Shown here in pieces: positions 28,185 to 48,197 of a stretch of 64,000 nucleotides of DNA; the stretch's first letter is position 1; each line of letters opens with the position of its first letter. This DNA comes from Convolutriloba macropyga (Eukaryota). The notes below the pieces were generated by a model that saw nothing but the letters and a program-made list of their open reading frames with translations, was not told the origin of the DNA and made no database searches. Location of the stretch: contig NC_134468.1 of the NCBI RefSeq assembly GCF_964194025.1, positions 71,548,001 to 71,612,000 of the forward strand, written 5' to 3'. The position numbers and the translations under genes were made by a program.

Positions 28185-29292
28185 AGTATCAAATTTGGCT
28201 GGGCTGCTACAGATCACACAATACGGGATCTCTTTATGTATGCCAGTCAAACTTGACAAAAGATATAACAAATCGAAGGCAAAGATATATGCCTAAGACC
28301 TGTCTGTGCTATAAGTCTCAATTTAAAATAGTTGGGGGGCTGAAAGTATTAAATTTATAAAAGAGTAAATATAAAATTACAGCTTACTAATTACCAGTTG
28401 TGTAGTGGTGAATTGGAGGTGAGCTGTTGGGCGATCGTTCACTTGGGTGTTTCTTCAGTTATGTTATTTGTCGAAAAAGAAAGTTATAAAATCAAATCTG
28501 GAATTATTTGTCTAAGTTATTAAACAATTTTGTTCGACTATTTTATTGTTAAAGTGAAGTTAAATTTTGAGAAAAAATGAAAGCAGTTGTCTGCTGCTTG
28601 TTTCTGGGTGTGATTTCTGTCTCTCTAATTTTATTCCGTCCCACTTCGCTGAGAGAAACAATTAATTCCTCTCAGCTCCGTTTGGGCCGATAGGGAGCGA
28701 ATCACAAACTCACGTTCATAGTGAGGTGCTTCTTAATTTTCCTATTGGCCGAGAAGGCAAGAGAATTAACTCTTTTTTATCTCACGGAAAAATTATTGAA
28801 ACTCCAAAAAATAATAAAAATCTAAAAAGCTGAGAGCATCAATTATTGATTTCGTAGGCGCCTGTTTTCTGCTTTTCCCCTCTTCTAAAACCGCAACAAT
28901 TATGGTTTTCTTGGGGGCTTTTTATGAGACTCTATTGTCTTTCCCCTGAAGCAATCTGCTTCATCTTTATTGAACTTGGGGGGAAAGATCTGCATTGCAA
29001 CTGTCAAAAGCAGAAGTAATTTAAATCAAAAGAAACTGTGGTTTTACAGGCCGCCTACGTTCAACAACGTACATTTTCTATCCTGGATATAAGCGAGGAG
29101 ATCCAGGCCTAAAGTTGTGTTATTTAAATAAGTCGAACTGAGTTGTTTAAATACTTGTGTACTGGTAGTCTTAATAAGCGTTAGTTTGTTTAGCGCGCGG
29201 CGAAAGAATGGTTAATTAGCGCCTAAATACGTTCGCTCTAATGCGGGATTAATTATCCGCTCATTTGTAACAGCTCTCGTAATACTACAGCT
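28185..29292 (-). repeat. 3' LTR of giant gypsy element (1108 bp)
   Basis: Matches 47088-48197 with about 5 differences seen by eye (3 substitutions, 2 one-base indels). Confidence 0.95.
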
Positions 29293-29305
29293 CACCCCGA
29301 TTTTT
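29293..29305 (-). promoter_or_regulatory. Short, imperfect polypurine tract before the 3' LTR
   Basis: Element strand reads AAAAATCGGGGTG immediately before the LTR start AGCTGTAG. Confidence 0.45.
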
Positions 29306-29479
29306 AAGATAAAAAAGAAAATGATTAAAAAAAGAAATATATTGCATCGTATATAATTTTATTGCGATTGAGACATATAAATGAGTTACTACAAGTTTAG
29401 AAAGTTATGAAATTAATCGCAAAGGGCAACAATGGTATGCTATAAAATAAATCGCAAAGGGCGATAATGTTGTGCTGTA

Positions 29480-30655
29480 TTATTCAAAAAATTCTGGGGG
29501 CAAAATGACTGGGCTTGACATCGGACTGTTACCATCGTCTTCGATCAAAAGAACCTCTTGTATATCGTCCTCAGTTGGTTTGTCCTTATCCATTGATTGT
29601 CGCTTTTTGTGCTTTTTAGCTCTCCTTTTGAGCTCGGAAATTTTGTTTCTTTGTTCTTCGTTTTCCTTCATTAATTGTGTTATTTTCTTTCCTAGCTCCA
29701 GATTCTTTTCTCCAAGTTTTTTGTTGGCGTTTGTTATTTCCAGATGTTTCAAGGAGAACGTTTTTAGCATAGTTTGTGCATTCGATTCGCTGGTTTTTTG
29801 GAGTTGATGGGCAACGACATATTGGCGCCGCCAATAGTCGTTAAGTAGTTGCTTTTCCTCAGGTGGTTTCTGTGATTCCATTTTCAGTTGTTCAAATTTC
29901 AGTTGCAATTCTTGCAACTCTGTTTCCTTTTGAAACAGTTCCTGCCTGAATGTGGTGTTTTCCTCTATTAAACTACTAGTATTGATGTTTGATAGTTCTG
30001 GCATCTCAACAGGAAAAGCGGAAATTGCGTCGTAAGGGACTTCAATATATGCGTCGAGCATATTATTCCTAAGGGTATAAGTGCCCTTCATAGGGTCGCG
30101 ATTTTTAATTCTCCACTTGTTGTTTTCTGTGGGGAGCGAGAAGGTTTTCAGAACTGGAAGCTTTTCGCTGTTGACTAGTATCTGTTGATGTCCATTTGAC
30201 TGGATGATGTTTATTTTACTAGCAACCTCAAACTTGTTGTAGTTTGGTTTCAGGAAATAGAGGAGGGTATTAACGTACCTCGGGTTTTCTTTGTTCATAT
30301 TTTCCTCTCGCGGTTTCTGTAATTTCAAACATTCTGAGGGTATCTTCCTGATAGCGTCGGGAACGAGATCTTCAATGTTGTTCATCTTAATAATTTTGTT
30401 TTTGTGATTGCTAATTTGTTGGATTGGGAATTGTCTCTTTCTGCTAATTTGCCAGTTGTTTTCGGGATCATATTGACTGGAAGTTGATGGAGATGCAATA
30501 GTTGTAGTAACTTGTTGTGTGTTCTGAGGTTTAAATGGAGGCTTTGAGAAAATAGGAGGCTGGGAAGAATGGGTTTGTGTTTGTTCTTGTTGTGTTGTCA
30601 CTTGTTGATGTTGACTGGGGATTATTACGCTTGCGAGTGTGGGTCTGGTAGTCAT
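29480..30655 (-). CDS. Accessory ORF, 391 aa: Q/T/P-rich N-terminus, globular middle, coiled coil, basic NLS-like and SIM-like motifs
   Basis: ATG start. Heptad-rich ELFQKETELQELQLKFEQLK and KKLGEKNLELGKKITQL; KRRAKKHKKR; IQEVLLIEDD. AATAAA follows at about 29360. Confidence 0.8.
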   Translation of the reverse strand: MTTRPTLASVIIPSQHQQVTTQQEQTQTHSSQPPIFSKPPFKPQNTQQVTTTIASPSTSSQYDPENNWQISRKRQFPIQQISNHKNKIIKMNNIEDLVPDAIRKIPSECLKLQKPREENMNKENPRYVNTLLYFLKPNYNKFEVASKINIIQSNGHQQILVNSEKLPVLKTFSLPTENNKWRIKNRDPMKGTYTLRNNMLDAYIEVPYDAISAFPVEMPELSNINTSSLIEENTTFRQELFQKETELQELQLKFEQLKMESQKPPEEKQLLNDYWRRQYVVAHQLQKTSESNAQTMLKTFSLKHLEITNANKKLGEKNLELGKKITQLMKENEEQRNKISELKRRAKKHKKRQSMDKDKPTEDDIQEVLLIEDDGNSPMSSPVILPPEFFE

Positions 30656-30950
30656 TGTTAGTGTTTCCTTGTGGATGATCTAAAATTATTTGATTTTGGT
30701 TAGCCTGTGTCATCAATATCACACATTATGGCTTCTTTTCAAGTTTGCAATTGTATTGCTAATATAAAAAAAAGTATTCTATTGTAAAAATGTTTTTGTA
30801 AGGTTTTGTTGCTAACTGCTTTACTTAAAAATTATAATGCTAAATGCATTTGTTATTAGAGTTTGGTATAAAAGTTTTTGTTTTGCTAAATGCAAAGTTA
30901 ATTTTAATAAAGGGAGGGGGGGTCATAAATTAAAAAATTTTTATACTTAT

Positions 30951-31075
30951 GCCAGGCGGGCAGCCCTGGCACAAGTACGTCTTTCTCCGCTGCCCGGAGG
31001 TGTGAGTCTTGGGGCGTGCGTCACACTAACACGGCTGCAACGACCCGTGCTGCTGGGGAGACAACCTTGCTGAGC
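30951..31075. ncRNA. GC-rich multi-stem structured element (candidate cis-acting RNA)
   Basis: Stems GCCAGG/CCTGGC, CTCCG/CGGAG, GTGTGA/TCACAC and CACGG/CCGTG, plus 8-nt complementarity CGGGCAGC/GCTGCCCG between two hairpins. Confidence 0.5.
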
Positions 31076-31642: not shown

Positions 31643-31666
31643 CGAGTGACTGTTCTCTTATTTTCC

Positions 31667-31789
31667 TTAGATAGAAACAGGAAAACCTTTGAGAAACTGC
31701 AGTAGGATGAGATTAATGAGGAACGATATGGCAAGCAAGGTAATTAGGATTAGGATAAATATTTTTGTGGATAGGTCTAGATTGGTCAT
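31667..31789 (-). CDS. Hydrophobic micropeptide 3 (40 aa), not in ORF track
   Basis: Hand translation: MTNLDLSTKIFILILITLLAISFLINLILLQFLKGFPVSI*. Confidence 0.65.
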   Translation of the reverse strand: MTNLDLSTKIFILILITLLAISFLINLILLQFLKGFPVSI

Positions 31790-31791
31790 TT

Positions 31792-31908: not shown

Positions 31909-31912
31909 TTTG

Positions 31913-32050
31913 TCAATTCAATGAGTAGTGTAGAACTAGGGTGAAGGAGGTGATTTGCTCCTGGTAAAAACTGAGTTGAATTAGGGATATCGATTGGATT
32001 AAAAATAAAATTAGGGAAAGAAGTAAAATTTTGGATGTTCTTGGACTCAT
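31913..32050 (-). CDS. Hydrophobic micropeptide 1 (45 aa), not in ORF track
   Basis: Hand translation: MSPRTSKILLLSLILFLIQSISLIQLSFYQEQITSFTLVLHYSLN*. Confidence 0.6.
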   Translation of the reverse strand: MSPRTSKILLLSLILFLIQSISLIQLSFYQEQITSFTLVLHYSLN

Positions 32051-32460: not shown

Positions 32461-32664
32461 TTATGGGACTGGTATGGTTGGAGGATTTGGTTGTTGATTA
32501 TTTTGGGATTTTATTGCTTGGTCTATTACTAATATAACTACTAACATCAAAAAATTGAAAGGAATACTTACAACAACGAGGAAAACGGTTAAAATGAAGG
32601 AGAAGGCTGCTGCAATAATCATGAGGGCCATTAATAAAAAATCAAGTACTTTGGGGATAAACAT
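32461..32664 (-). CDS. Small membrane protein (67 aa from first ATG; track ORF starts at GTG 32709)
   Basis: MFIPKVLD followed by about 39 uncharged, mostly hydrophobic residues (one long TM or a hairpin) and a Q/N/P tail. Confidence 0.65.
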   Translation of the reverse strand: MFIPKVLDFLLMALMIIAAAFSFILTVFLVVVSIPFNFLMLVVILVIDQAIKSQNNQQPNPPTIPVP

Positions 32665-32702: not shown

Positions 32703-33101
32703 TTACCACGGGTTGTTTGGGTCAATTGTTTGTTTGCATAAGGGGCATTTAGTAGTGGTGAAGGTCATACACTGCAAACAAATTGATTTTTCAGGGTGTA
32801 GGCTTTTGAAGTGGCTGTGGCAAGTGGATAACTTTTTGATTTCTTGACAAGAATCACACTGGAAATAATGGCAATGACTGATTGTATAAATGGGAGTTAC
32901 GCAAATGGGGCATTTAGGTTGGTTCCAATATTTAAATAATTCGTTTCTACAAGGAATGCAAGCAAAATGGGGGGGCTGACCATTTGGGTTTTTGTGCAAT
33001 TTTTTGAATTGACGGCAAGGGAGATAACAAACAGGGCATTCAACTTTAGGGGTTGTATCAATTTGAGGTTGCTGAGACGATATCTTCAGAATGTTTCCCA
33101 T
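32703..33101 (-). CDS. Double RING-like zinc finger protein 1 (132 aa), begins MG
   Basis: CPVC-x10-H-x8-H-x2-CIPC-x12-CPIC-x14-CDSC..CLQC-x7-CPLC; the ATG overlaps the upstream stop (TAATG). Confidence 0.85.
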   Translation of the reverse strand: MGNILKISSQQPQIDTTPKVECPVCYLPCRQFKKLHKNPNGQPPHFACIPCRNELFKYWNQPKCPICVTPIYTISHCHYFQCDSCQEIKKLSTCHSHFKSLHPEKSICLQCMTFTTTKCPLCKQTIDPNNPW

Positions 33102-33367
33102 TATAAGGAGAAATTAGAAAGATCCGGGTATACGAGTTCTAATCCATGGTGTTCAAGTTCGTTGGGGATAGTTACATTTAAATCTGCAATAGCAAAAAAG
33201 AAATTCCAGTGTTTTTCGTTTGGATAAATATAATAATGATTAATGGTACCTGTGCTTAAGAACATATAAGTTATTTTGATACATGCTTTATATTGTGTAA
33301 AACAGATATTGAACCATCTTTCTACTTTAAGAATTTTAATTTTTTCCTTACCAATAAACAAAATCAT
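33101..33367 (-). CDS. Small accessory protein family A, member 5 (88 aa)
   Basis: MILF..ERWF..CIKITY..PNEKHWNFF; aligns by eye with 33507, 33737, 33979 and 34502. Confidence 0.75.
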   Translation of the reverse strand: MILFIGKEKIKILKVERWFNICFTQYKACIKITYMFLSTGTINHYYIYPNEKHWNFFFAIADLNVTIPNELEHHGLELVYPDLSNFSL

Positions 33368-33506: not shown

Positions 33507-33737
33507 TTACTGAAGAGCGCCCAAGTTGAATGGGAAGTGCTCTTCGATATCGATGAGTGCGAGAAAGAATTCCCAGTGCATCATTCCCATTGTTACTCGA
33601 GTAGAACCCTCACATCCACGCTCGTAGTCTGTATAGTGTATAATTATACAGGGTTTAATCTCTGCTGTGGAAGTTTCAATGAAAGATCTCTCGAGGGATT
33701 CTACTTTGACTAGGCGCTCACCAAAGTGGAACAGCAT
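33507..33737 (-). CDS. Small accessory protein family A, member 4 (76 aa)
   Basis: MLF..ERSF..PCIIIHY..HWEFF..PFNL; TAATG overlap with the upstream ORF. Confidence 0.75.
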   Translation of the reverse strand: MLFHFGERLVKVESLERSFIETSTAEIKPCIIIHYTDYERGCEGSTRVTMGMMHWEFFLALIDIEEHFPFNLGALQ

Positions 33738-33970
33738 TATAGAAGATCTAAATTAAAAGGGATTTTAGAACCATTTAAAGCTTGGGATATATTTATAAAG
33801 AATGTCCAATAGGGGGAAGATGGTGTTAAGGTAATGGTTCCATCAGTCCAAGTGTTTAAATATTCAAAATGGAGTATTAATTGTGGGATTACTCTGTTGC
33901 TTTTTGTCGTGACAAATGATTTTTCAAAAAATTGTATTTGTATAAGGCAGTTTTGGTATGAGAATATCAT
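33737..33970 (-). CDS. Small accessory protein family A, member 3 (77 aa)
   Basis: MIF..EKSF..PQLILHF..LTPSSPYWTFF..PFNL. Confidence 0.75.
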   Translation of the reverse strand: MIFSYQNCLIQIQFFEKSFVTTKSNRVIPQLILHFEYLNTWTDGTITLTPSSPYWTFFINISQALNGSKIPFNLDLL

Positions 33971-33978: not shown

Positions 33979-34263
33979 TTAATTGTTAATAGTTTCCAAT
34001 TCTTTAGTAATGAAATCGTTTTGAGAACAATCACTTTTCGGCAATTCAAAATAAAGATTGTGAGGTACACAGTTTGGGTTTTCTAGAATAAAGAGGAAGA
34101 ATTTCCAATGAACTGAAAGAGGATTAATACTTATTAAACAAATTTTTTCACTTTGGATTTCTTTGAGCGTTACTAGCATAGTAGGTACAGGAGTTGGGTA
34201 TGCATCAAAAGATCGTTGAATTTTTTGTAACTCTACAAATTTATTGTTAACTGCAAATATCAT
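33979..34263 (-). CDS. Small accessory protein family A, member 2 (94 aa)
   Basis: MIF..QRSF..PTMLVTL..PLSVHWKFF..PHNL. Confidence 0.75.
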   Translation of the reverse strand: MIFAVNNKFVELQKIQRSFDAYPTPVPTMLVTLKEIQSEKICLISINPLSVHWKFFLFILENPNCVPHNLYFELPKSDCSQNDFITKELETINN

Positions 34264-34278: not shown

Positions 34279-34518
34279 CTAAGCAATGTAGATTGGATGT
34301 TGTACTTGAAATACCGAGTTCTCTTTGAATGCTAGAAAAATGGTGAATTCGGCAAACTGAGGATGAGTAATGAAAATAGTTAAAAGTCTGTAAATATTTG
34401 TCATGGGTTTTTTTGCGAAAGTCATTATACTTATAGCGGAAACATAGTATACGGCTAATAGCTCAAAATTTTGGTTTCCGATTCTGATTTGTAAGTTTCT
34501 ATTAGTTAAATGAATCAT
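34279..34518 (-). CDS. Small accessory protein, family B-like (79 aa)
   Basis: C-terminal THPQFAEFTIFLAFKENSVFQV resembles PNF..LL..L...NSVIE of 44838 and 45344. Confidence 0.6.
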   Translation of the reverse strand: MIHLTNRNLQIRIGNQNFELLAVYYVSAISIMTFAKKPMTNIYRLLTIFITHPQFAEFTIFLAFKENSVFQVQHPIYIA

Positions 34519-34744
34519 GTTGCTGATCTAGCTCGTTTGGCAAACTATTAGGGTCGAATTGTGCTAAATACACGAAATAATTCCAATACAACGAATGAGG
34601 GGTTAAAATCACAGTATCGTATTCCCAAGTGTCCCAAAACTCAAAATTTATAATGATTTGAGGGAAAATGTCTCCGTGATTTTCTTCAAAAGTTTTCTTT
34701 ATTTGATAAATTGTAACGAGTCTATCTTGAAACAAAAAGTACAT
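34502..34744 (-). CDS. Small accessory protein family A, member 1 (80 aa)
   Basis: MYF..KKTF..PQIIINF..LTPHSLYWNYF..PNEL; closest by eye to 33737. Confidence 0.75.
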   Translation of the reverse strand: MYFLFQDRLVTIYQIKKTFEENHGDIFPQIIINFEFWDTWEYDTVILTPHSLYWNYFVYLAQFDPNSLPNELDQQHDSFN

Positions 34745-35046: not shown

Positions 35047-35331
35047 TCAAAGTCTAATAATATTTTTCTTCAGATGCTTTGAAACAATTTTGTATTCGAC
35101 TCCAATGTTTACAAAAGTAATTGTGTCATCAATCAGGGCTCTTAACAATGAGAAGTATTGAAAATTTGAATGCGGTACGTCCAAGTCTATAATGTCACTG
35201 AAGTAGAAAGATGCAACTCTAATAGTTACAGTAGTTTTTAAATCGGAAAGACTTGAGGATAATATCTGTCCGGTGTATTGTCCAAATCGAATGAATAAAG
35301 CGTTAGGCTGTTTTATGAATTTGGGTTGCAT
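35047..35331 (-). CDS. Small accessory protein (94 aa), unknown function
   Basis: ATG start, co-oriented, first ORF after env; weak resemblance (IRFG, HSNFQYF) to 34279. Confidence 0.6.
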   Translation of the reverse strand: MQPKFIKQPNALFIRFGQYTGQILSSSLSDLKTTVTIRVASFYFSDIIDLDVPHSNFQYFSLLRALIDDTITFVNIGVEYKIVSKHLKKNIIRL

Positions 35332-35458: not shown

Positions 35459-37807
35459 TTAAGGAGGTGCCACCACACTTCGAATGGTTGCATCATTTTG
35501 TGGTTGTGGTTGATGTGACGCCAGATTTGGGTATTCTCCTTTATTATTTTCTGTATGACAATGCTCATCAATTTTATTTTCTCTTGGTTGATCCTCAACG
35601 CATTTGTAAGTTTTTTCTATTGTGCTGTAAGGTTGATAATTACTAAGCGGTAAAAAATGATTGTTGTTCTGCGGGGCCGACGGTTTGGTTTCGTTAGAGA
35701 ATACCGGTGTAAAGAACGATAAGATACAGAGATTATATGTTGCTCCTAATAGAATTTTCCAAAAACCCATTGTTTTGTTGGATATTTTGTGGATTTCGAA
35801 CGCTCTTATGATTGTTACGATTACATCAGTTAAGAATTTTGTGCACAAGAAACAAGCAAAATAAACTCCAATTTTTTCCAGATAAAAAGTGATGATTCCA
35901 AAAGTGCCTTTGAACTGGTCTGTAAAAAATGTAGGTGAAAGAAGAGAATCTAGATAAATTTGTCTGTTAATTCCCATTGCTGACGCATAGATATCTTTTT
36001 GAGAATAGTCTATGCTTCTTCCTTCTAGAACTTCTCTTGAAATTTTTGTCAAAACAGATTTTGAAGCTTCCGAATGCAAGATATTGTCCCAAAAAGATTT
36101 AAGTTGATTTGGTGTGTAAATTCCGGCACGTTGCGATTCGTAACCGGTAAATTTTGGAATAGAACTAATAACTCTTGAAGAGAATATTTTTGGCGGTTGT
36201 AAAGGAACAGGTGCTGGCATCAAATGGTACCATGAATTTTCATTATCAATATCTAATTGGTAGGCATTTTTGTAGCCTCCAACACAATCTACTTCGTTTG
36301 CAAAAGGGTAGGTTTGTCGAGTAATTGGGTCGACGAACATTGTCCTACCATCATAATGAATAGGAATCCTATCATAACACTGTTCAAGAACCTGAAGTGG
36401 TGAGTTTCGTTTTGGACAGTGGTACAGCCAACCTATGCTACCATCTGTGTCTAAGAACATCGAGCGGTTGCCGGTTAACATATATCCAGCTAAACGATTG
36501 TTTTGGATAGCCTGCATTAGTATCATTTGTTTTTGAGTTCGGTCAAGTTCGCATTGTTCTATGACCAAACCTTTCCATGCTTGTTTTATTTGCATGTAAT
36601 TATGATATATGACAAAATCCATTTTTACCGCAAGGTTAAGATCATAGTCTAACTTGTCTTTGTCTAAGTGTTCCCATGCAACAAAACCATTGTCGGATGT
36701 TCGGATCTGTTCATCTGAAGGCTTCCTATTAAACCCATTTACACTTAGGCTATTGTCAGGTTCAACACGAAGTTTATGAAAAAATTGTTGAGTTTTTGTT
36801 TTATAAGGTTTGCCAGTCTTCATATTAAATCCGCCTTTATAAGAAACATATAAAGAATCTAAATTTGTTCTGTAAATAAATTCTGGTTTTCCACACACCT
36901 TTCCTTTTTCATCAATTACTCTAATTTTTATGTCCATTTCAGCAGGAGAATACGTTCCTGGTCCTTCATAGGGCGTCTCCGGTTTTTCATCACTCACTAT
37001 GAAATACTGTACGTTACCAAGTTCGTTTTCATGTTTTAGCATTTTTGCGTTTTGTGAAAATCTTTTAGTAACTATACAATTTTCCGGTGCCTCCCAATTG
37101 TATGCAAAGGGGTCGAGTGATGTCGAATGACAACCTCCTTCTGAGAGGGCATAAGGAAGTTTTAGTCCTTGACTGTTATAGACAGTTCTGTCATTAAGAT
37201 CAATATCGAGTACAGTTTCTTGCATCAAGGTTTCAAAAGAGAAGTGTTTAATTTGACCACGATTATCACAAGATGTTGATGATTCACCTTCAAGATCAAC
37301 TCCCTGGTTTTTATAGGAGACAGTTTTTATTCCATGTTTTATGTCTATTTCCTTGTCATCATCGTCAAATTCGGTAACAGTAATTTTTCCAGTTTTATTA
37401 GCATTTAGGCATTGTTCGGGTGAAACAATAATATCGTATGTTATTATTGGAGCGTTGTGTACAATTGATGAATGGGAAAACATACCACAATTATAACGAA
37501 TGAGCATTGCAGTGACTTTGCACATAAGAGCTTTAACAAAGGTCCGATAAGACCGTTGATAAAGTGTTACATGTGTATCAACCATTTGAATGTTTTCGGG
37601 TGTAATTTTGCAAGGAGAAACTTGTGTTAAAGCATACATTTTATTTTCTTTCATTTTAGAACAGTCATAATGAATGACCCTAAGTTTGTTAGATACGTCA
37701 TTAATATCCTCAGTAGCGTTAATAACTATAGAAAGAGTACAAAAGTAGAAAAGACTTATAAGTAAATAAGAAAAATAGAGTTTTTCAAAACAAGGATATC
37801 TTTTCAT
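35459..37807 (-). CDS. env: Envelope glycoprotein, chuvirus-G/herpes-gB-like (class III fusogen-like), 782 aa from first ATG
   Basis: Signal-like FSYLLISLFYFCTLSIVINA; Cys-rich ectodomain with HYDCS, CELDR, WLYHC..CYDRIPIHYDGRTMFVDPITR..VDC and GIYT; C-terminal hydrophobic segments; located after pol. The frame is open from 37867. Confidence 0.8.
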   Translation of the reverse strand: MKRYPCFEKLYFSYLLISLFYFCTLSIVINATEDINDVSNKLRVIHYDCSKMKENKMYALTQVSPCKITPENIQMVDTHVTLYQRSYRTFVKALMCKVTAMLIRYNCGMFSHSSIVHNAPIITYDIIVSPEQCLNANKTGKITVTEFDDDDKEIDIKHGIKTVSYKNQGVDLEGESSTSCDNRGQIKHFSFETLMQETVLDIDLNDRTVYNSQGLKLPYALSEGGCHSTSLDPFAYNWEAPENCIVTKRFSQNAKMLKHENELGNVQYFIVSDEKPETPYEGPGTYSPAEMDIKIRVIDEKGKVCGKPEFIYRTNLDSLYVSYKGGFNMKTGKPYKTKTQQFFHKLRVEPDNSLSVNGFNRKPSDEQIRTSDNGFVAWEHLDKDKLDYDLNLAVKMDFVIYHNYMQIKQAWKGLVIEQCELDRTQKQMILMQAIQNNRLAGYMLTGNRSMFLDTDGSIGWLYHCPKRNSPLQVLEQCYDRIPIHYDGRTMFVDPITRQTYPFANEVDCVGGYKNAYQLDIDNENSWYHLMPAPVPLQPPKIFSSRVISSIPKFTGYESQRAGIYTPNQLKSFWDNILHSEASKSVLTKISREVLEGRSIDYSQKDIYASAMGINRQIYLDSLLSPTFFTDQFKGTFGIITFYLEKIGVYFACFLCTKFLTDVIVTIIRAFEIHKISNKTMGFWKILLGATYNLCILSFFTPVFSNETKPSAPQNNNHFLPLSNYQPYSTIEKTYKCVEDQPRENKIDEHCHTENNKGEYPNLASHQPQPQNDATIRSVVAPP

Positions 37808-40900: not shown

Positions 40901-43007
40901 TAAACAGTTTTTCGTGTTCCATTGTCCAAACAAATTTAGTTTCTGTGCGGGTTAAGTCATAGAATGGTTTGCAGTCAACATGCAAATTTTTGATGTACAT
41001 GCTGTAGAATCCTAAGCAGCCTAGAACTTTCATGACATCACGTTTGTTTTCAGGCGACTTAAGTGCTTTTAAATCTGCTACTCGCTTCTTGACTGGTTGT
41101 ATTCCATCTTTACCTACTACATGTCCCAAGAACTGTACTTTCCTAAGGAAAAATTTAGTCTTTTCAGGTTGAGCTTTCAATCCTGATTTCCTTAAAAGTT
41201 CATGGTACTTGTCAATTATTTCAAACATTTCGGTTTCATCTTGCGCTTGCATGATGGTGTCATCAATGTAGGTTATAGCTTGTTTTTTTCTAATTAATGG
41301 TGCAAAATGGATAGTCATTATACGACTAAAGAAATTAGGTAGACCGCATAGGCCGTAAAATCCGCGTTCAAATGTGTATTGCTTTGGACCAATTACAAAA
41401 CTTACCAGCTGTTTGGTTTCCTCAGTTAGAGGGACTTGGTTATAGGCTGAACAAAGATCACTGGTTGTGAAGAAATTACCTTTTAATCTAGTTAATAGAC
41501 TTCCGATTGGTTCGAGTGGCCATGAATATCGACTAAGGTCTGTTATTGAATTCAGATATCGGGCATCTATAACCAGTTTTACTGTGTTCCCCTTGGGTAG
41601 GATTATGATTGGATTAATAAATTCTGATCCCATTTCTTTATCATTACCCATTTCCCGGATTATACCTGTTTTACACAGTTGTTCCAATAGGTTTTCTAGT
41701 TTTTCCTGATAATGTAATGGTACTTTGGATGGTCTTTGTTTTGTCAAAGTTGAATTAGGTAAAAGTTTAACATGAAACTTTTGTTTTATCTTTCCAACAT
41801 CGTATTTGTGTTGAGAGTAAACGTCTTTATTTTTAGTTAAAGTCCTCAGTAACTTGTCTAAGTTTTCGTCATTGATATCAGCTTGACTGAAATCAAATTT
41901 TTTGAGAAACGCTTGATCGGTTTTGTCAAACCTGTTAAGTTTTTCTTTGGGAAGTTCAACGGGTCTGATGTTCTCATCAGTTGTTTCTAATTGTGGCTTA
42001 AGATCCTTGAGGTCGTCGCTAAAGTCTGTTTCTAATTCGTAGTTGTTGGTAAAATCTTGTTGCCTTTTTCGCTTTTCTGTTTTCTTTTGTTTTTCAGGAG
42101 TTTTGCTTGCAAAGAAATTTTGAATTTTTGAAATTTTTGGACCTTGTTTTTCACTAACATGGAATATTTGATCCCAATTAGTGTCACTATTCATTAGGTG
42201 GTTTATGAATGCAACGTTGTCAACTACAGAAAATTCTGGGTCTTGTCTAATTTCAATGTCTTCTAAAGTGTGTCCAATAGGACCCTTTTGGATGACAACC
42301 TTGTTGTTTTGAGGATTGTTTAGCATTATTGGTAATTCCTTTTCTTTTCTAAAACACTGAACGTTGTAAGTATAAATTCCTTGAGCTTGCAGTTCACTTC
42401 CAATTACGAAGGAGGTTCCCTTTCTGAAGAATTCATTTGGTGGTCTAATTGATATTACTCGAGTTGATTTTGGTGCTAATGGTAGTTGCTGGTCAAGAGT
42501 TACAACTTTGTAAGAGCTAATGTATGGATAGCTTTTCGTTTGGTATCTAGATAGTGTGACGGCTACTTCAGGGTAAGTTTTTAAATCAATTTTTGGAGTG
42601 GTTAGGTCAATAGATTTTACTGTAGATTCAAGGAAATCCATTCCCAACAGATTTGGCTTGCAACCATCTTTTGCTGAAACCCATGTGGTAACTTCCACTT
42701 GATACTTTCCTTCAATGTCGAAAGAAGTTTTGAAAGTAATTTGACCTAGAAGTTTTAGTTTCTCACCATTAACCGCTAAAGTATGATTTTTTGAAGCTTT
42801 CATCTCAATGTGTTGTAATTTACATAGTTCAAGATAAGTGTGGTAATTAATTATAGAGCTTGATGCTCCTGTGTCCAATAAAAACTGTGTTTCTAAGCCG
42901 TTATTTTTATTTTTGTCTCCGACGGATTGGTATAAATTAATATAGATATGTGAGTAACTTGCTTTGTTATCATTAGTGTTTATGAACGGAGACCTGTCTA
43001 GTTTAAA
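37911..43007 (-). CDS. pol: Pol (protease, dUTPase-like relic, RT, RNase H, integrase), expressed by -1 frameshift from gag
   Basis: FLLDTGAS; YIDD (41259-41270); VDAS..ELCG..TDHKPL..DILSR; H-x5-H..CxxC; IDHKGP..YDKG..KVE; GPY motif. The frame is open from the slippery site at 43007 to the stop at 37911. Confidence 0.95.
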   Translation of the reverse strand, partial: FKLDRSPFINTNDNKASYSHIYINLYQSVGDKNKNNGLETQFLLDTGASSSIINYHTYLELCKLQHIEMKASKNHTLAVNGEKLKLLGQITFKTSFDIEGKYQVEVTTWVSAKDGCKPNLLGMDFLESTVKSIDLTTPKIDLKTYPEVAVTLSRYQTKSYPYISSYKVVTLDQQLPLAPKSTRVISIRPPNEFFRKGTSFVIGSELQAQGIYTYNVQCFRKEKELPIMLNNPQNNKVVIQKGPIGHTLEDIEIRQDPEFSVVDNVAFINHLMNSDTNWDQIFHVSEKQGPKISKIQNFFASKTPEKQKKTEKRKRQQDFTNNYELETDFSDDLKDLKPQLETTDENIRPVELPKEKLNRFDKTDQAFLKKFDFSQADINDENLDKLLRTLTKNKDVYSQHKYDVGKIKQKFHVKLLPNSTLTKQRPSKVPLHYQEKLENLLEQLCKTGIIREMGNDKEMGSEFINPIIILPKGNTVKLVIDARYLNSITDLSRYSWPLEPIGSLLTRLKGNFFTTSDLCSAYNQVPLTEETKQLVSFVIGPKQYTFERGFYGLCGLPNFFSRIMTIHFAPLIRKKQAITYIDDTIMQAQDETEMFEIIDKYHELLRKSGLKAQPEKTKFFLRKVQFLGHVVGKDGIQPVKKRVADLKALKSPENKRDVMKVLGCLGFYSMYIKNLHVDCKPFYDLTRTETKFVWTMEHEKLFNDIKNRISEDTILAIPDTKYPFHVHVDASSIGVGSILVQEFPEGKRIVSFNSRIYTKEEQKMSTTARELCGVISALQTHEHYLIGSPHPVYVYTDHKPLMYLWGRRGKLSHRFFRYQLVISQFQNLKIIWTEGKNLAFPDILSRNVKIKDLDKYQLKHKKIPKDISFYDEHGNEEKYFILRDNEKGPADDFFPILKQSITGIDKFIFKNDKMVKQKYDNNQNRLCSINNISEDFSYGSSINHYRRHRKHEITPVSEQEEGETSDHYTEIDSYPDEGITEQNFDPISEFELFNENQSPELDFDKLYIDQTNTTDSEYRFPLEYDKVFLVKNSTCIDKTELAKKFPENTKIQDARELIDKLTIFSKEVDLNTSVICQEQLKDPVIQQIRQLRTNNNKDEKKIEFRQSKAIMSYINNFEKLSFVGNILCIQHQTDEPDIEFLKICVPLSLFFKVFQLAHCELSGHVGLDKTLANVKRFFYWPGMYKWIENLIADCLECQKNKRKRRDIHEAPLEKWTDTVPFPFHTVHIDHKGPLNPPSNGKHHCLVIVDSFSRFIQVYPVRSTDAVDTIKALEKFILSFGIPQKLVYDKGSAFMNQDFASYIHELGITPAPRTAYAPWTNGKVEIQNKHLGAHFRIFLEQARGKWDELAPKFAFSHNTVPNASTGISPYEIVFGQKPQIPLSLKLGLLRNSQLTCSSEFCKDLPLHRHTLQTSKNTEIDKLLKPTINNSLLMRENQFKQIYNNAYKKSLENNNRAHKHRNKHKLGKPLEVGQKVLMENHQIELGKSKKLHELRSGPYTVEKKLTNVNYELTLDSNPATRKVAHRNHLVEYYPATETIPELTLEYGIDKNNCDTFYNNLMTSQMNKLNSPLTKFSFQSPTNTEYFPVDNFIRRDSPVQNFDPDRTPTNFDSGFNEASSGGRNDPPPVQTHLPSGSRTRSSTPCPQHNSRIPLDPNLSPLRPNTSEQGPSNLQTLENNNNNRRTSSRSAKPPSRYQAGFT
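42915..43007 (-). promoter_or_regulatory. -1 ribosomal frameshift signal: U UUA AAC plus downstream stem
   Basis: T TTA AAC (43007-43001) directly before the gag TAG. After a 7-nt spacer, GTCTCCG (42993-42987) is complementary to CGGAGAC (42921-42915). The -1 frame is the pol frame. Confidence 0.8.
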
Positions 43008-44332
43008 TACTCGTCGTTGTGATTCTCATTATTGTAATAGTTTCTGGAAGTTTCACTGGTAAAGTGAACTCGAGGGCTTCGCCCTTCACTGTTATCTCTT
43101 GAATGAGTATTATTGTTTTGTCTAGTAGGTGTCCTATCCCGGTCATGGTCTCTACTCCTATCACGATATCGATTATCTGATCTTGGAGGACCGTTGCTTT
43201 GTCTATCCCTACTATTTTGCCTATTGTTATCTCTGTAAAAGTTGTTTCGATAGTTATTTTGTCGTTCCTGTGATCGGTTATCGTAAGAAGATGATCGATA
43301 ATTGTTTGAAGAGTTTGATGGGTACGGTGATCGATGTCGGTAGTCTGATCTAGAGTTGTTTTGATAATTGGATTGATTTTGGTTATAACTATTTCTCTGT
43401 CTGTCCCTAGAATTTCGATTGTCATAATTGTTTGATTTGTAATTTTGTTGACCTGGTGAATGGCACCTACTACGTTTATAATTATCTGTGAACTTTTCTC
43501 GTTGTTGAGGTGGGTTTCGGTTTTCGTTTTTAAAGTCCTTGTACTTAAAGCAGAAAGCTATTGTGTGACCTGAACGTTTGCAAAACTTGCAGAATCTAGT
43601 CTGGTTTTGTTTGAATCTGGGGTTGTCGTTGTTGTATGTGGCGTTTATTTTATGATCTTTCATTAAATTTGCAATTTCTGTGAGTTGGTTTTTTAACCCT
43701 TCTATTTCTATTTTATTGTCGATACTACTTGAGGCAGTACCCGTGAATTCACTGCTAACAGAAAAACTTAAGTCTTTAGTTGCTACATGATCCTGTAATT
43801 GTTGCCAAGTTGTAGCTGGGTTTTCTATTAACCGCTGATGTGCCTTTTGCTTGAGTGTAGGTGGCGTTAATCCTCTTACAAAGTACTCCATACACTTAGC
43901 GTTACGCTGGTCGTTGTTAAAATCTGGATCTGGCCATCCTTTTTCAACTGCTTTTGTTACTCGGTGTGTATAGCTTTTTATCAATTCATCTGGTTGCCTT
44001 TTAATACTCTCGACTTCAATTCTTTTCCTATACTTGTCTTTTGCATCAGTAAAGCGGGTAATGAACTGATTTCTAACTTCGTTCCATGCTAAACCTGGTG
44101 CTAAGGTTTCAAACCATTGGGCTGCGGGCCCACGCAAAACCGAACCAAACAATGCTTTTTGTCTAGCGTCGTATGCTGCTTGTAAATCAGCATCCGCAGG
44201 ATCTCTTGTTCCTAGTGAGAATTGGATTTTTCTTTGTATTAAACTAAAGAATTCCTGGGCATCTTCAGATGGATCTAAACCTGTAAATTTCTCTAACGCT
44301 ATGTCGGGGTACGCAACAACGTTCGCTGCCAT
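42998..44332 (-). CDS. gag: Gag (444 aa) with CCHC knuckle and long R/S/N/D-rich tail
   Basis: AAACATGG start context; capsid-like LRGPAAQWF..WNEVRNQFITRF..QPDELIKSYTHR; CKFCKRSGHTIAFC (CX2CX4HX4C). Confidence 0.92.
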   Translation of the reverse strand: MAANVVAYPDIALEKFTGLDPSEDAQEFFSLIQRKIQFSLGTRDPADADLQAAYDARQKALFGSVLRGPAAQWFETLAPGLAWNEVRNQFITRFTDAKDKYRKRIEVESIKRQPDELIKSYTHRVTKAVEKGWPDPDFNNDQRNAKCMEYFVRGLTPPTLKQKAHQRLIENPATTWQQLQDHVATKDLSFSVSSEFTGTASSSIDNKIEIEGLKNQLTEIANLMKDHKINATYNNDNPRFKQNQTRFCKFCKRSGHTIAFCFKYKDFKNENRNPPQQREKFTDNYKRSRCHSPGQQNYKSNNYDNRNSRDRQRNSYNQNQSNYQNNSRSDYRHRSPYPSNSSNNYRSSSYDNRSQERQNNYRNNFYRDNNRQNSRDRQSNGPPRSDNRYRDRSRDHDRDRTPTRQNNNTHSRDNSEGRSPRVHFTSETSRNYYNNENHNDEYLN

Positions 44333-44441: not shown

Positions 44442-44816
44442 CTAAAGTAGAAAGTTGAATTGTTTGTTTTGTGTTATGAATTTTATTTGTTTAGGCCCGT
44501 TTAATGATTGTATTTTAAATTCAAAGTTTTTGCCGTTATCAGTGCTAAAGATTTCAACCCAAGAGTAAATATCAGTTTGCTCGACGGTAAAATTTAATAA
44601 CCAAGGATACGTATTTTCAGAGTGTTTAAATTCAACAGAGTATTGGTGAAATCTGTTTATTTTTGAAAATCTAATTTGTGTGACAAATTCTGTTTTTATA
44701 AGTAATTTAACTCTATCTGGTAAACTCGGATCGTCAGGAGAAACGTTGATGTATTTGGGTTTAATGATTTTTAAAATTTGTAAACCAAACGGGGAAGTTA
44801 TATTTTGGTGGCTCAT
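44442..44816 (-). CDS. Accessory ORF upstream of gag (124 aa from first ATG), unknown function
   Basis: Co-oriented, non-repetitive, beta-strand-like composition; the track start 44822 is GTG. Confidence 0.6.
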   Translation of the reverse strand: MSHQNITSPFGLQILKIIKPKYINVSPDDPSLPDRVKLLIKTEFVTQIRFSKINRFHQYSVEFKHSENTYPWLLNFTVEQTDIYSWVEIFSTDNGKNFEFKIQSLNGPKQIKFITQNKQFNFLL

Positions 44817-44837
44817 CCACACGCTAGATGATAACGT

Positions 44838-45074
44838 TTAGGCTAATTCTATTACACTGTTTCGATTTCTTAGAGCAACCAAAAGTTCATTAAAGTTTGG
44901 GTTAGTCCACTTATAAGTAATGTAGATTTCGGTCTGTGTTTCGTTAGGACAATGATGGTAAATGCATAAGAAGTTTCTGTTCTGATCAGTTAAATAATAT
45001 GAAACTTTGCCTATTTTGTTCTGTACTTTAATACTTATGTTTAAATTCTGAACATTTACTTTAATATATGACAT
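44838..45074 (-). CDS. Small accessory protein family B (78 aa from first ATG), upstream of gag
   Basis: IYITYKWTNPNFNELLVALRNRNSVIEL matches the ORF at 45344. Confidence 0.7.
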   Translation of the reverse strand: MSYIKVNVQNLNISIKVQNKIGKVSYYLTDQNRNFLCIYHHCPNETQTEIYITYKWTNPNFNELLVALRNRNSVIELA

Positions 45075-45343: not shown

Positions 45344-45601
45344 TTAATTATTGGCTAAATTTTCTGCAGGAATCTCGATCACACTGTTTTTAGTTTTTAA
45401 CAAAGTTAGTAAATTCTGAAAATTAGGGCTCTCAGATGCATAGGTTATATAAAAATTAGCTGGGGAATTATGCTCAAACACGTAGAAAATAGCTACAAAG
45501 GTAATTCCGTCAGTAATAAATCGTGTTATTTTACCCCTTCTAGTGTTTTCTATTGCTGTTAGATTAAGATGTTCTACAATAACTATTCCAGTTTGGTCCA
45601 T
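45344..45601 (-). CDS. Small accessory protein family B (85 aa), upstream of gag
   Basis: FYITYASESPNFQNLLTLLKTKNSVIEI matches the ORF at 44838. Confidence 0.7.
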   Translation of the reverse strand: MDQTGIVIVEHLNLTAIENTRRGKITRFITDGITFVAIFYVFEHNSPANFYITYASESPNFQNLLTLLKTKNSVIEIPAENLANN

Positions 45602-46099: not shown

Positions 46100-46860
46100 A
46101 CGTGTGCTTAAATGTGTAGAAAATTAGATATAAATTACACTAAACACGTATTGGGGGGATGAATTCTGGTTAAATTTACGTTAAATTGTTTGAAAATGCT
46201 ATATTTTGGTCAAAAATTCAGTAAAAATTAGACATATGTTACTCTAAATATGATTTGGGGGGATGATTTCTGGTTAAAAATCGGCTATTTAGTGTGAAAA
46301 TGCTAAAATTCTGCTGTGAATTTGGTGAAAATCGGCTAAAATTTAGTTTAATTAGATGTTGAGGCGATGAAATTTGGATAATTTTTGGTTATTTGGAGTG
46401 CATATGCTAAAATTTAACCATAAATTTGGTCCAAATCGGGTCAGAAATAGTCTAAACAAGGTTTGGGGGGATAAATTCTGTATAAATTTCGATTATTTAG
46501 TGTGAAAATACTAAAATTTAACCATAAATTTGGTCAAAATCGGGTTAGAAATAGACTAAACAGGTTATGGGGGGATGAATTTTGTATAACTTTCAATTAT
46601 TTAGAGTGAAAATACTAAAATTCAACCATAAATTTGGTGAAAATTGGGTTAAAATCAAATTATATATGTTTTGGGGGGATAGAATCTGGTTGAATTTCGG
46701 TTATTTAAGGTGTAAATACTAAAATTTAACCATAAATTTGATGAAAATTGGGTGAAAATTAGGCTAAATAGGTTTTGGGGGGATGATTTTTGGTTAAATT
46801 TCGACTATAAAGTGTGAATTTACTTCAATTGTTATATAAATAAACTAAAAATCGGACATA
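46100..46860. repeat. 104-bp degenerate tandem array (about 7 units) in the 5' leader
   Basis: GGGGGGAT anchors at 46153, 46257, (46361 degenerate), 46465, 46569, 46673 and 46777; related decayed sequence extends to about 45700. Confidence 0.9.
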
Positions 46861-47070
46861 GATTACCCCCACCCGGGTCAGAACAATTTTACAAGAGCAA
46901 AGAATCAGTTGCCTGTTACTATTTTAATGTAAATTTACTGTATTTCGGCCGTAAATTTGATATAAATTACTCTATTTGTTTGTCTATTAGTGTGCTTTCA
47001 CTTCTGTGGTAGTGGTTATTTTACTATTTTAATCCGATCGGATAGAAAAACAAAAATTCAGGCGTGATTC

Positions 47071-47088
47071 TTTCCTCTGGGCGCACCA
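47071..47088 (-). promoter_or_regulatory. Primer-binding site TGGTGCGCCCAGAGGAAA, overlapping the last LTR base
   Basis: TGG-initiated sequence abutting the 5' LTR end (...GATAACT); cognate tRNA not recognised. Confidence 0.7.
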
Positions 47089-48197
47089 GTTATCAAATTT
47101 GGCTGGGCTGCTACAGATCACACAATACGGGATCTCTTTATGTATGCCAGTCAAACTTGACAAAAGATATAACAAATCGAAGGCAAAGATATATGCCTAA
47201 CACCTGTCTGTGCTATAAGTCTCAATTTAAAATAGTTGGGGGGCTGAAAGTATTAAATTTATAAAAGAGTAAATATAAAATTACAGCTTACTAATTACCA
47301 GTTGTGTAGTGGTGAATTGGAGGTGAGCTGTTGGGCGATCGTTCACTTGGGTGTTTCTTCAGTTATGTTATTTGTCGAAAAAGAAAGTTATAAAATCAAA
47401 TCTGGAATTATTTGTCTAAGTTATTAAACAATTTTGTTCGACTATTTTATTGTTAAAGTGAAGTTAAATTTTGAGAAAAAATGAAAGCAGTTGTCTGCTG
47501 CTTGTTTCTGGGTGTGATTTCTGTCTCTCTAATTTTATTCCGTCCCACTTCGCTGAGAGAAACAATTAATTCCTCTCAGCTCCGTTTGGGCCGATAGGGA
47601 GCGAATCACAAACTCACGTTCATAGTGAGGTGCTTCTTAATTTTTCTATTGGCCGAGAAGGCAAGAGAATTAACTCTTTTTTATCTCACGGAAAAATTAT
47701 TGAAACTCCAAAAAATAATAAAAATCTAAAAAGCTGAGAGCATCAATTATTGATTTCGTAGGCGCCTGTTTTCTGCTTTTCCCCTCTTCTAAAACCGCAA
47801 CAATTATGGTTTTTTTGGGGGCTTTTTATGAGACTCTATTGTCTTTTCCCCTGAAGCAATCTGCTTCATCTTTATTGAACTTGGGGGGAAAGATCTGCAT
47901 TGCAACTGTCAAAAGCAGAAGTAATTTAAATCAAAAGAAACTGTGGTTTTACAGGCCGCCTACGTTCAACAACGTACATTTTCTATCCTGGATATAAGCG
48001 AGGAGATCCAGGCCTAAAGTTGTGTTATTTAAATAAGTCGAACTGAGTTGTTTAAATACTTGTGTACTGGTAGTCTTAATAAGCGTTAGTTTGTTTAGCG
48101 CGCGGCGAAAGAATGGTTAATTAGCGCCTAAATACGTTCGCTCTAATGCGGGATTAATTATCCGCTCATTTGTAACAGCTCTCGTAATACTACAGCT
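47088..48197 (-). repeat. 5' LTR of giant gypsy element (1110 bp), termini 5'-AGCT...AACT-3'
   Basis: Direct repeat of 28185-29292; followed on the element strand by the PBS. Confidence 0.95.

Follow-up and report, generated by a model that had tools for sequence, protein, structure and literature searches.

Does the 20-kb stretch at positions 28187-48197 of this 64,000-nucleotide window of the Convolutriloba macropyga genome (contig NC_134468.1, positions 71,548,001 to 71,612,000; hereafter "the window" denotes all 64,000 nucleotides) represent a single retrovirus-like element, and are the many small open reading frames that it carries besides gag, pol and env genuine genes of that element? 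The original prediction held that this is an intact, env-carrying gypsy element whose two LTRs differ at about 5 of 1110 positions, with uninterrupted gag, pol and env, three extra ORFs before gag and 15 after env, all ATG-initiated, tightly packed, on the element strand and falling into internal paralogue families. This observation is confirmed by our analysis, with minor corrections. Alignment of the two LTRs over 1107 positions shows 3 mismatches and 1 one-base gap (a divergence of 0.36%), and we find fourteen ATG ORFs of 40 aa or more after env; we could not support a fifteenth. The features of the element, all of which lie on the minus strand, are collected in Table 1.

Table 1. Features of the element, with positions in the window and the observations that support each. 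Omega values are from comparisons among genomic copies; L numbers denote other loci that carry copies or relatives of the element.
Feature	Position (strand)	Description	Observations
Whole LTR element	28187..48197 (-)	20,011 bp between BLAST bounds; the true 5' end is probably 3 nt further in	Nine other copies are collinear from pol to the 3' LTR
5' LTR	47091..48197 (-)		1107 nt aligned to the 3' LTR; 5' LTRs of other copies align from TGTAG
3' LTR	28187..29292 (-)		
Primer-binding-site-like sequence	47074..47088 (-)	Starts with TGG, 2 nt after the 5' LTR	Kept in L017-L020; L016 differs at one base; no tRNA gene found in the window or the loci for comparison
Polypurine-tract-like sequence (weak)	29293..29305 (-)	Short purine-rich tract next to the 3' LTR	Identical in all seven 3' LTR junctions examined
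Tandem repeat array	46132..46818 (-)	104-bp repeats (6.6 units) in the long 5' leader	The leader of L017 is one unit shorter
A1	45344..45601 (-)	85 aa, pre-gag accessory gene, paralogue of A2	Omega 0.22; 14 of the 15 listed members of its 90% cluster (137 members) are 85 aa; orthologues in L003 and L032
A2	44838..45074 (-)	78 aa from its ATG	Omega 0.13
A3	44442..44816 (-)	124 aa from its ATG, unrelated to A1/A2	Omega 0.18; orthologue in L032 at E 1.6e-16; no Pfam or PDB match
gag	42998..44332 (-)	444 aa, CCHC zinc knuckle, long low-complexity tail	Pfam Retrotrans_gag 1.9e-5; omega 0.30
pol	37911..43025 (-)	Open frame, -1 relative to gag, overlapping the gag end by about 28 nt, with a U UUA AAC heptamer just before the gag stop; PR (DTG), RT (YIDD), RNase H, integrase	Omega 0.14
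env	35459..37807 (-)	782 aa from its ATG; N-terminal signal-like segment, C-terminal membrane-spanning segments by hydropathy	Pfam PF24664 Monjiviricetes_fusion, 1.4e-38, 132.8 bits against a cut-off of 27; omega 0.19
B1	35047..35331 (-)	94 aa, divergent member of the B family	Orthologues in L003 and L032
B2	34502..34744 (-)	80 aa	Open in 9 of 9 copies
B3	34279..34518 (-)	79 aa, overlaps B2 by 17 nt	Orthologue in L032 at E 2.5e-21
B4	33979..34263 (-)	94 aa	
B5	33737..33970 (-)	77 aa; predicted structure of four strands and a C-terminal helix	AF2 pLDDT 90.2; no significant fold match
B6	33507..33737 (-)	76 aa	Start overlaps the B5 stop by one base (UAAUG)
B7	33101..33367 (-)	88 aa	
C1	32703..33101 (-)	132 aa, two RING-like zinc-finger modules, starts with MG	Start overlaps the B7 stop by one base; weak Pfam RING hits below the cut-off; AF2 pLDDT 79.9
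Small hydrophobic protein	32461..32664 (-)	67 aa from its ATG	Open in 9 of 9 copies; omega 0.25
C2	32057..32434 (-)	125 aa, double RING-like	Omega 0.18 together with C3
Small hydrophobic ORF	31913..32050 (-)	45 aa	Omega 0.51 from 16 changes; weakest evidence of any part
Small hydrophobic ORF	31667..31789 (-)	40 aa	Omega 0.25 from 12 changes
C3	31250..31642 (-)	130 aa, double RING-like, starts with MGxxxS	Omega 0.18 together with C2
D	29480..30655 (-)	391 aa; N-terminal part rich in Q, T, S and P; C-terminal part coiled-coil-like with a basic cluster and an acidic tail; hypervariable cassette	Omega 0.11 within its own type; no Pfam or PDB match

The gaps between accessory ORFs range from a 17-nt overlap to 139 nt, with one gap of 302 nt (B1-B2) and one of 594 nt (C3-D). 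The paralogue families are real: the C family shows 25 invariant columns, and the B and A genes align as families, which is far more than chance. The window copy has no clean target-site duplication, as its flanks read CAGC versus CTAC, or AAAC versus CTAC, but another copy for which both flanks are available has GAGG on each side.

The element belongs to a young, multi-copy family. The 90%-identity clusters hold 148 distinct env sequences, 137 distinct A1 sequences and 97 D members, and the exact C1 protein is indexed in 26 blocks of the sequence collection; 24 contigs carrying it were read. Nine independent copies are 97.4-98.1% identical to the window element over pol to the 3' LTR. That other copies might lack the accessory block, or show omega near 1, had been named in advance as grounds for rejection; instead, these copies keep the block, with accessory frames open in 6-9 of 9 copies compared with 6 of 9 for pol and 8 of 9 for env, and omega is far below 1. 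Among the window copy and the nine others, omega is 0.13 for B1-B7 (61 synonymous and 31 nonsynonymous changes), 0.18 for C2 and C3 together and 0.11 for D, similar to the values for pol and env, whereas the two other frames of B, C2+C3 and D give 1.1-3.4. For A1-A3 omega is 0.13-0.22, although the off-frame values for these genes (0.5-3.1) and for the three small hydrophobic ORFs (0.66-1.41) are noisier because they rest on few changes. Because the copies were retrieved by exact match to C1, C1 itself is uninformative for selection.

The accessory genes are also found in diverged sister families. In L003, a sister locus with 62% env identity, the genes are collinear with those of the window even though synonymous sites are saturated (pS 0.70-0.93), and pN is 0.30-0.49 for accessory genes and 0.23 for env; L003 also has one ORF with no counterpart in the window. 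A second sister family with 54% env identity, found in Tara Oceans plankton metagenomes (L032-L034), keeps A, A3, B1-B6 and C1 in the same order. A third, more distant family from another assembly (L021, env 43%) keeps B and C genes. Profiles of B and C find dozens of diverged small proteins of the same length, and homologues of B align from their own first Met, which supports independent cistrons.

What these proteins are is less certain. The B family has a confidently predicted new small fold. The C proteins contain two conserved Cys/His modules and the top fold hits for C1 are mostly RING domains, but this assignment is weak, as the Pfam scores fall below the cut-off and both Foldseek and a profile search of the PDB give E values of 0.18 or worse. 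D is exchanged as a cassette: copies that are 98% identical elsewhere carry D at 98%, 55% (L005 and L013) or 44.5% (L006) amino acid identity, and the cassette boundaries coincide with the D ORF. We found 41 homologues of D, all in ENA assemblies and none named. No informative homologue or fold match was recovered for B, A, A3 or D, and we found no relative of any of the families outside these elements; for B, C and D, a search of 1.84 billion cluster representatives and word-indexed searches returned no homologue outside small ORFs of these assemblies.

How does this element compare with known systems? The gag-pol-env backbone is not new, as env-carrying Ty3/gypsy elements are reported across metazoans. 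These "ancient errantiviruses" (Chary and Hayashi, eLife 2026, PMC13524379) have LTRs, the gag-pol-env order, a captured viral fusion glycoprotein and multiple near-identical copies in invertebrate genomes, but that survey defines elements by three ORFs and reports no accessory genes, whereas the element described here adds about 17 and reaches 20 kb. The giant Burro / GYPSM1 gypsy elements of planarians (PMC6431247) have many extra functions, including RING-type motifs and an env-like region that hits fusion glycoproteins of mononegaviruses, but their extra domains are fused into one polyprotein of about 4,900 aa with env between gag and pol; here the extras are separate small cistrons placed before gag and after env, and the B, A and D families have no recognizable domains. 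Complex retroviruses and accessory-rich fish foamy-like endogenous retroviruses (Retroviridae; PMC6431247) likewise have accessory genes beside gag-pol-env, a hypervariable host-facing gene and gag-pol by -1 frameshift. The present element belongs to a different family (its gypsy-type pol has a single RT-adjacent RNase H by Pfam) and has about three times as many accessory genes, arranged as tandem paralogue arrays with stop/start overlaps. Bdelloid rotifer LTR retrotransposons with additional ORFs (PMC5408684) and Cer1 of C. elegans with its CERV protein (PMC10309623) carry one to a few extra ORFs used by the element, some with recognizable enzymes, but, in the accounts consulted, no paralogue arrays and no comparable gene number. 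Anakin, a Bel/Pao element with a chuvirus glycoprotein, and the lokiretroviruses, whose env is similar to Mononegavirales fusion proteins (PMC12440569, PMC9040795), also have an env related to glycoproteins of negative-strand RNA viruses, but they have different pol lineages (Bel/Pao, and retrovirus-like with dual RNase H, respectively), and no accessory arrays are described in the texts consulted. The arenavirus Z protein is a small myristoylated RING protein, and C1 and C3 are similarly small, start with Met-Gly and carry RING-like zinc modules; however, the C proteins have two modules and no sequence or fold match to Z came back from any search, so this is an analogy only. In the literature we found no description of this gene load or of its operon-like packing, and the number of accessory genes is far more than in any described retrovirus or retrotransposon that we could find.

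Several alternatives were considered. It is possible, although unlikely, that the arrays are resolved into single-gene mRNAs by spliced-leader trans-splicing of a polycistronic precursor, rather than by re-initiation or cis-splicing. The very short intercistronic distances resemble those in operons of some trans-splicing animals, such as tunicates, and one sister family comes from zooplankton-size fractions, but no spliced-leader RNA or any other Rfam family was found in the window, and several junctions overlap or have no AG between stop and start. It is more doubtful that the accessory block is passively carried cargo, consisting of host genes or another mobile element trapped between the LTRs with no role in the element's own cycle. 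LTR retrotransposons are known to capture extra ORFs (PMC6431247, PMC5408684), relatives with 37-44% env identity (L002, L022) carry different post-env ORFs, and the cassette exchange of D and the unmatched ORF of L003 could be read in the same way. However, purifying selection among transposed copies can act only if the genes matter for propagation of the element, homologues of B, C and D were not found outside small ORFs of these assemblies in the searches described above, and orthologous order has been kept since families with 54% env identity split. A composite of a standard gag-pol-env element with unrelated nested or adjacent elements, for which the missing target-site duplication and the existence of deletion derivatives (L008, and L003 without pol) might speak, is very unlikely, because the nine copies at unrelated loci share the same continuous structure from pol through D to an identical LTR junction, five further 5' copies share the LTR-leader-A1-A3-gag layout, no internal LTR-like repeat or second integrase was found, and one copy has the 4-bp GAGG duplication. 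Equally unlikely are chance open frames in AT-rich, recently copied DNA: although an 80-codon frame would often survive by chance among copies that differ by only about 2%, this reading is refuted for A, B, C and D by the frame-specific selection signal and is opposed by the persistence of the ORFs in saturated sister families, in the same order where the locus is complete enough to judge (L003, L032), so that only the 40- and 45-aa ORFs, which rest on 12-16 changes each, leave it any room.

Based on these data, we propose with good confidence that this is a complete, recently inserted provirus-like copy of a young, abundant family of env-carrying Ty3/gypsy (Metaviridae) elements in a marine metazoan genome, whose lineage has built up about 17 accessory genes, partly by duplication, that the element needs for its own propagation. 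The interpretation given in the original prediction, of a recently active and possibly infectious lineage with a duplication-built set of host-interaction genes, is therefore supported only in part: the intact element, its young family and the selected, partly duplicated genes are borne out, whereas infectivity and action on the host remain inference. Our sequence comparisons establish the LTRs, the gag with its zinc knuckle, the PR-RT-RH-IN order of a pol that would be reached by a -1 frameshift at U UUA AAC, the relationship of env to fusion glycoproteins of negative-strand RNA viruses, purifying selection on the accessory ORFs (least securely on the 45-aa ORF) and their retention, each as its own cistron and in the same order, in the two closer sister families, whose synonymous sites are saturated, but transcript structure, translation and protein function are all inferred from sequence. 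Env and the accessory genes are probably expressed from subgenomic RNAs, either spliced or internally promoted, and within the tightly packed arrays ribosomes may re-initiate at stop/start overlaps (UAAUG, AUGA), although no calicivirus-type UGGGA motif lies upstream of any accessory start. The C proteins may act as RING-type ubiquitin-ligase-like adaptors, or as myristoylated membrane or matrix factors, and the small hydrophobic proteins may act at membranes. D may be a nuclear regulatory or host-binding factor that is swapped between lineages by recombination, and the B array may be a set of sub-functionalized small binding proteins. Taken together, these proteins would serve to manipulate the host cell or its defences.

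The element lies on the minus strand, and its two LTRs align over 1107 positions with 3 mismatches and one single-base gap. The same LTR occurs in 12 other copy ends, and comparison with these indicates that the LTR proper probably begins at TGTAG, 3 nt inside the BLAST boundary, and ends at ...TTTGATA, such that it starts with TG but ends with ...GATA. A conserved TGG-initiated 15-mer follows the 5′ LTR after 2 nt, and a short purine-rich tract precedes the 3′ LTR; no tRNA gene for matching was found in the window or in the loci compared, nor does the window contain any Rfam family. The window copy has no matching 4-bp flanks, whereas the one other copy for which both flanks could be compared has GAGG on each side. 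The leader is about 1.5 kb long and holds 6.6 units of a 104-bp tandem repeat, which is kept in all 5′ copies examined and is one unit shorter in one of them (L017). This array may serve as an enhancer, a packaging signal or a small-RNA target.

The gag protein (444 aa) matches Pfam Retrotrans_gag at 25.2 bits against a cut-off of 24.1, and a CX2CX4HX4C zinc knuckle is present in its translation. The pol frame is open in the -1 frame from about 28 nt before the gag stop, with a U UUA AAC heptamer directly before that stop. Pfam hits to pol fall in the order protease, RT, RNase H, integrase (residues 2-84, 466-587, 651-782, 1102-1159, 1182-1273 and 1439-1485), and DTG and YIDD are visible in the translation. 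This is the gypsy order, and the assignment to Ty3/gypsy (Metaviridae) rests on this Pfam domain architecture. Only the RT-adjacent RNase H (PF17917/PF17919) was detected, with no second RNase H hit at E 0.01 or better; the element thus resembles complex retroviruses (Retroviridae) in having accessory genes, but it is not a member. The third ORF, env (782 aa from its ATG), matches Pfam PF24664 (Monjiviricetes_fusion) at 1.4e-38, as do all 20 aligned relatives, and has a signal-like N-terminus and C-terminal membrane segments. Sequence and profile searches of the PDB with env returned nothing.

Three accessory ORFs precede gag, of which A1 and A2 are paralogues and A3 is unrelated to them. Fourteen follow env: B1-B7 (76-94 aa); C1-C3 (125-132 aa), each with two conserved Cys/His modules, C1 and C3 starting with MG; three small hydrophobic ORFs of 67, 45 and 40 aa interleaved with C; and D (391 aa). 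By summing the ORF lengths, we estimate that about 79% of the internal region is coding. Gaps inside the arrays are -17, 15, 8, -1, 139, -1, 38, 26, 6, 123 and 24 nt, and two junctions are UAAUG stop/start overlaps. The locations of these and other features for which coordinates were recorded are collected below.

Coordinates of features of the element, its relatives and the surrounding window
Sequence	Position	Strand	Feature
Window	28187-29292	-	LTR
Window	47091-48197	-	LTR
Window	46132-46818		104-bp tandem array in the 5′ leader
Window	29480-30655		Gene D
L005 (copy with a divergent D)	12440-13571		Gene D region compared with the window
L006 (copy with a divergent D)	12454-13569		Gene D region compared with the window
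L013 (copy with a divergent D)	12437-13568		Gene D region compared with the window
L005	18113-18634		86-aa and 80-aa ORFs about 3 kb downstream of the 3′ LTR, sizes typical of A-type and B-type genes; may belong to a neighbouring element
L003 (sister family, env 62%)	12685-13002		105-aa ORF between the B1-like and B2-like genes
L032 (sister family, env 54%)	1-14441		A / gag-pol-env / B / C layout; also in L033 and L034
L002 (more distant relative)	9741-13012		Post-env ORFs without similarity to A, B, C or D
L022 (more distant relative)	12351-12980		Post-env ORFs without similarity to A, B, C or D
L022	14558-15139		193-aa ORF, a gag-like fragment
Window	28187-54332		Same locus, flanks included, as L001, L010, L014 and L015 (ENA ERZ25071359 ctg37246)
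Window	56161-61104	+	Fragments of a Bel/Pao retrotransposon (DUF1759 gag-like, RT, Peptidase_A17, integrase, DUF5641), split over several ORFs
Window	4982-6757	-	ORF for an acidic, low-complexity, secreted-looking protein with DDDN and SSYGSSYPY repeats
Window	24841-25566	-	ORF for a second acidic, low-complexity, secreted-looking protein, with a signal-like start
Window	25064-25271		Run of 208 N inside the second acidic-protein ORF
Window	1072-1603		Simple-sequence region reading as V-, P- or T-rich ORFs in several frames; probably low-complexity DNA and not a gene

To ask whether the accessory ORFs are genes, we used an exact look-up of C1, which returned nine independent copies in one metagenome-labelled assembly (ENA ERZ25071359) in addition to the window's own locus; exact look-ups of env (from a GTG start) and of A1 returned nothing new. 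The own-locus contig is 99.91-99.96% identical to the window (about 9-13 differences), and C2 is called there as a shorter product, which may reflect another haplotype or an assembly difference. The nine copies are 97.4-98.1% identical to the window element from pol to the 3′ LTR, and all of them hold the accessory block. Intactness was scored as a single open frame covering at least 95% of the window protein, because counts based on raw BLAST HSPs are misled by the non-coding stretch upstream of the env ATG and by end-trimming of HSPs. Polymorphic codons were classified column by column across the window copy and the nine copies, without building a consensus sequence.

Open frames among the nine copies, and omega in the annotated frame across the window copy and the nine copies
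Gene or group	Open copies of 9	Omega
pol	6	0.14
env	8	0.19
B1	7	
B2	9	
B3	8	
B4-B7	9 each	
B1-B7		0.13 (61 synonymous, 31 nonsynonymous)
67-aa hydrophobic ORF	9	0.25
C2	8	
45-aa ORF	8	0.51
40-aa ORF	9	0.25
C3	9	
C2+C3		0.18
D (391-aa type)	6	0.11

In the two wrong frames the same statistic is 1.1-3.4 for pol, env, B, C2+C3 and D, and 0.66-1.41, from few changes, for the three small hydrophobic ORFs. Variants seen in a single copy also show low omega, and most differences therefore arose while the lineages were replicating, not after insertion. Six copies covering the 5′ end gave in-frame omega of 0.22, 0.13 and 0.18 for A1, A2 and A3, against off-frame values of 0.5-3.1. C1 was left out of the selection test because the copies were chosen for having an identical C1.

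The accessory genes are also conserved at greater depth. L003, a locus of the same assembly that lacks pol and whose env is 62% identical, has A1-like, B1-, B2-, B4-, B5-, B6-, C1-, C2- and D-like ORFs in the same order. Between the two families pS is 0.70-0.93, which is saturated, whereas pN is 0.23 for env and 0.30-0.49 for the accessory genes. The 105-aa ORF of L003 has no counterpart or remnant in the window, where a 302-nt gap sits instead, and the window's B3 and B7 have no partner in L003, so genes turn over within the array. A second sister family (env 54%; L032-L034) comes from three independent marine metagenome assemblies, two of them labelled Tara Oceans (ERR1726546 of PRJEB4352; TARA_SAMEA2611380_METAG); PRJEB4352 covers the 0.8-2000 µm eukaryote size fractions (PMC10746220). 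The three contigs are 99.6-99.7% identical to each other and carry three A1/A2-like ORFs, A3, gag, pol, env, orthologues of B1-B6 in the same order and a C1-like gene, with even tighter junctions of -8, -8, 12, -1, 2, -4 and 2 nt. The host is therefore likely a planktonic or otherwise widespread marine animal, and the Bel/Pao fragments in the window support a metazoan host. L021, from a further assembly (env 43%), keeps B and C genes. The B array therefore predates the split of these families, and each paralogue has been kept individually.

Gene content still turns over at longer range. Relatives with env at 37-44% identity (L022, and L002 from GCA_013332775.1) carry other post-env ORFs, of 73-338 aa, that show no similarity to A, B, C or D, and different branches of this env-carrying lineage seem to have acquired different accessory sets. 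A search of IMG/VR and a first JGI scan found no relatives, but env relatives at 32-43% identity occur on short contigs of JGI-held metagenomes (L027-L031, from Ga0126342, Ga0126343 and Ga0114947, and L024-L026, from JAAUXW and JAAUYE). Ga0126343 is a Cyphastrea coral metagenome (bioRxiv 10.1101/391565), which shows that distant cousins live in coral holobionts. A coral host, considered on the basis of these env relatives, was rejected because they are too distant (34-43% identity on fragments) and a closer family is found in the Tara plankton data. Elsewhere in the window, the two acidic-protein ORFs share a C-terminal CCDGKC-type cysteine motif and may be host genes; neither has a Pfam match.

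A profile search of 1.84 billion cluster representatives with the B family found 41 hits, all small proteins of 49-162 aa, most of which align from their own first Met. AlphaFold2 with this alignment gives a confident model (pLDDT 90.2) of four strands and a C-terminal helix. This predicted fold has no significant match in the PDB or BFVD; the best matches, EF-P domain I and COMM domain, had E 0.03-0.04. A and B are not detectably related (hhalign probability 0.1%), and a PDB search with A3 returned nothing. For the C family, the profile search found 34 hits, all unnamed ENA proteins. The best Pfam RING scores, 18-20 bits, are below the cut-off of 27. The best fold matches of the C model (pLDDT 79.9) are mostly RING domains (MDM2, TRIM69, TRAF5/6, TRIM21, MEX-3C, TRIM25), with a few ribosomal zinc-ribbon proteins among them, but at E 0.18-0.8 in Foldseek. 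C is therefore RING-like, and not proven to be RING.

D has no Pfam or PDB match. It has 41 homologues of 220-413 aa, which, one weaker partial hit apart, fall into identity bands of about 98%, 73-90%, 48-55% and 43-45%. Copies that are about 98% identical through pol, env, B and C carry D at 98%, 55% (L005, L013) or 44.5% (L006) amino-acid identity, so that D exists in at least three very different forms, and the divergent segment coincides with the D ORF. This indicates cassette exchange by recombination. The A region is also more divergent between copies (90-95% nucleotide identity) than is gag-pol-env (97.5-98.5%).

We regard two points as shown by the analysis, namely that gag-pol is expressed by a -1 frameshift, as read from the sequence, and that about 20 genes are under selection. 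The remainder of the mechanism is inferred. Env and the accessory genes would need subgenomic expression, for which precedents include spliced env RNAs and an internal env promoter in Oikopleura Tor elements (PMC4402516). Expression from multiply spliced mRNAs would likewise be inference, and only five strong donor-like sites lie on the element strand, two of them the same LTR site. Stop/start overlaps are conserved across families, which suggests coupled termination and re-initiation within the arrays, although no UGGGA motif that would support a calicivirus-type mechanism lies upstream of any accessory start. Trans-splicing of an operon-like precursor is a rival explanation. A host-manipulation role is inferred from the RING-like modules, the MG starts of C1 and C3, the small hydrophobic proteins and the hypervariable D; any E2 binding or ubiquitin transfer by the C proteins would also be inference.

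The backbone belongs with the env-carrying gypsy elements already reported across metazoans (PMC13524379), a study that does not describe accessory genes. Burro packs its extra domains into one giant polyprotein, with env between gag and pol; rotifer elements and Cer1 have one or a few extra ORFs; and complex retroviruses have fewer accessory genes and a different pol. We found no paper that describes the present organisation, in a comparison that did not extend to Repbase. The original prediction of an intact 20-kb gypsy element with env and a large set of accessory genes is confirmed as an observation. Its interpretation, a recently active and possibly infectious lineage with a duplication-built set of host-interaction genes, is supported only in part, being largely right on structure, recency and the reality of the genes but unproven on function and infectivity.

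A more far-reaching possibility, which we consider unlikely on present evidence but cannot exclude, is that this lineage would be the most gene-rich kind of reverse-transcribing virus-like element known, with about 20 genes against about 9-10 in complex retroviruses. In this view its arrays of small genes would be translated from polycistronic RNA by coupled termination and re-initiation at conserved stop/start overlaps, an operon-like logic inside an animal retroelement, and D would be exchanged between lineages as a host-facing specificity factor.

Reverse-transcribing elements are usually thought to be held to about 10 kb and a handful of genes. The element described here is a young, successful 20-kb gypsy lineage with about 17 selected accessory genes, including ancient tandem paralogue arrays, double RING-like proteins, small putative membrane proteins and a recombining hypervariable cassette. 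Its compact stop/start junctions make it a natural test case for how animal cells express polycistronic viral RNA. Because close relatives occur in Tara Oceans plankton metagenomes, and more distant env relatives in metagenome collections that include a stony-coral (Cyphastrea) sample, the lineage may be widespread in the sea. If this reading of the element holds, the retroelement lifestyle can support a host-manipulation gene set of the kind seen in large DNA viruses, and the lineage also provides four orphan protein families (A1/A2, A3, B and D), one of them (B) with a confidently predicted new fold.
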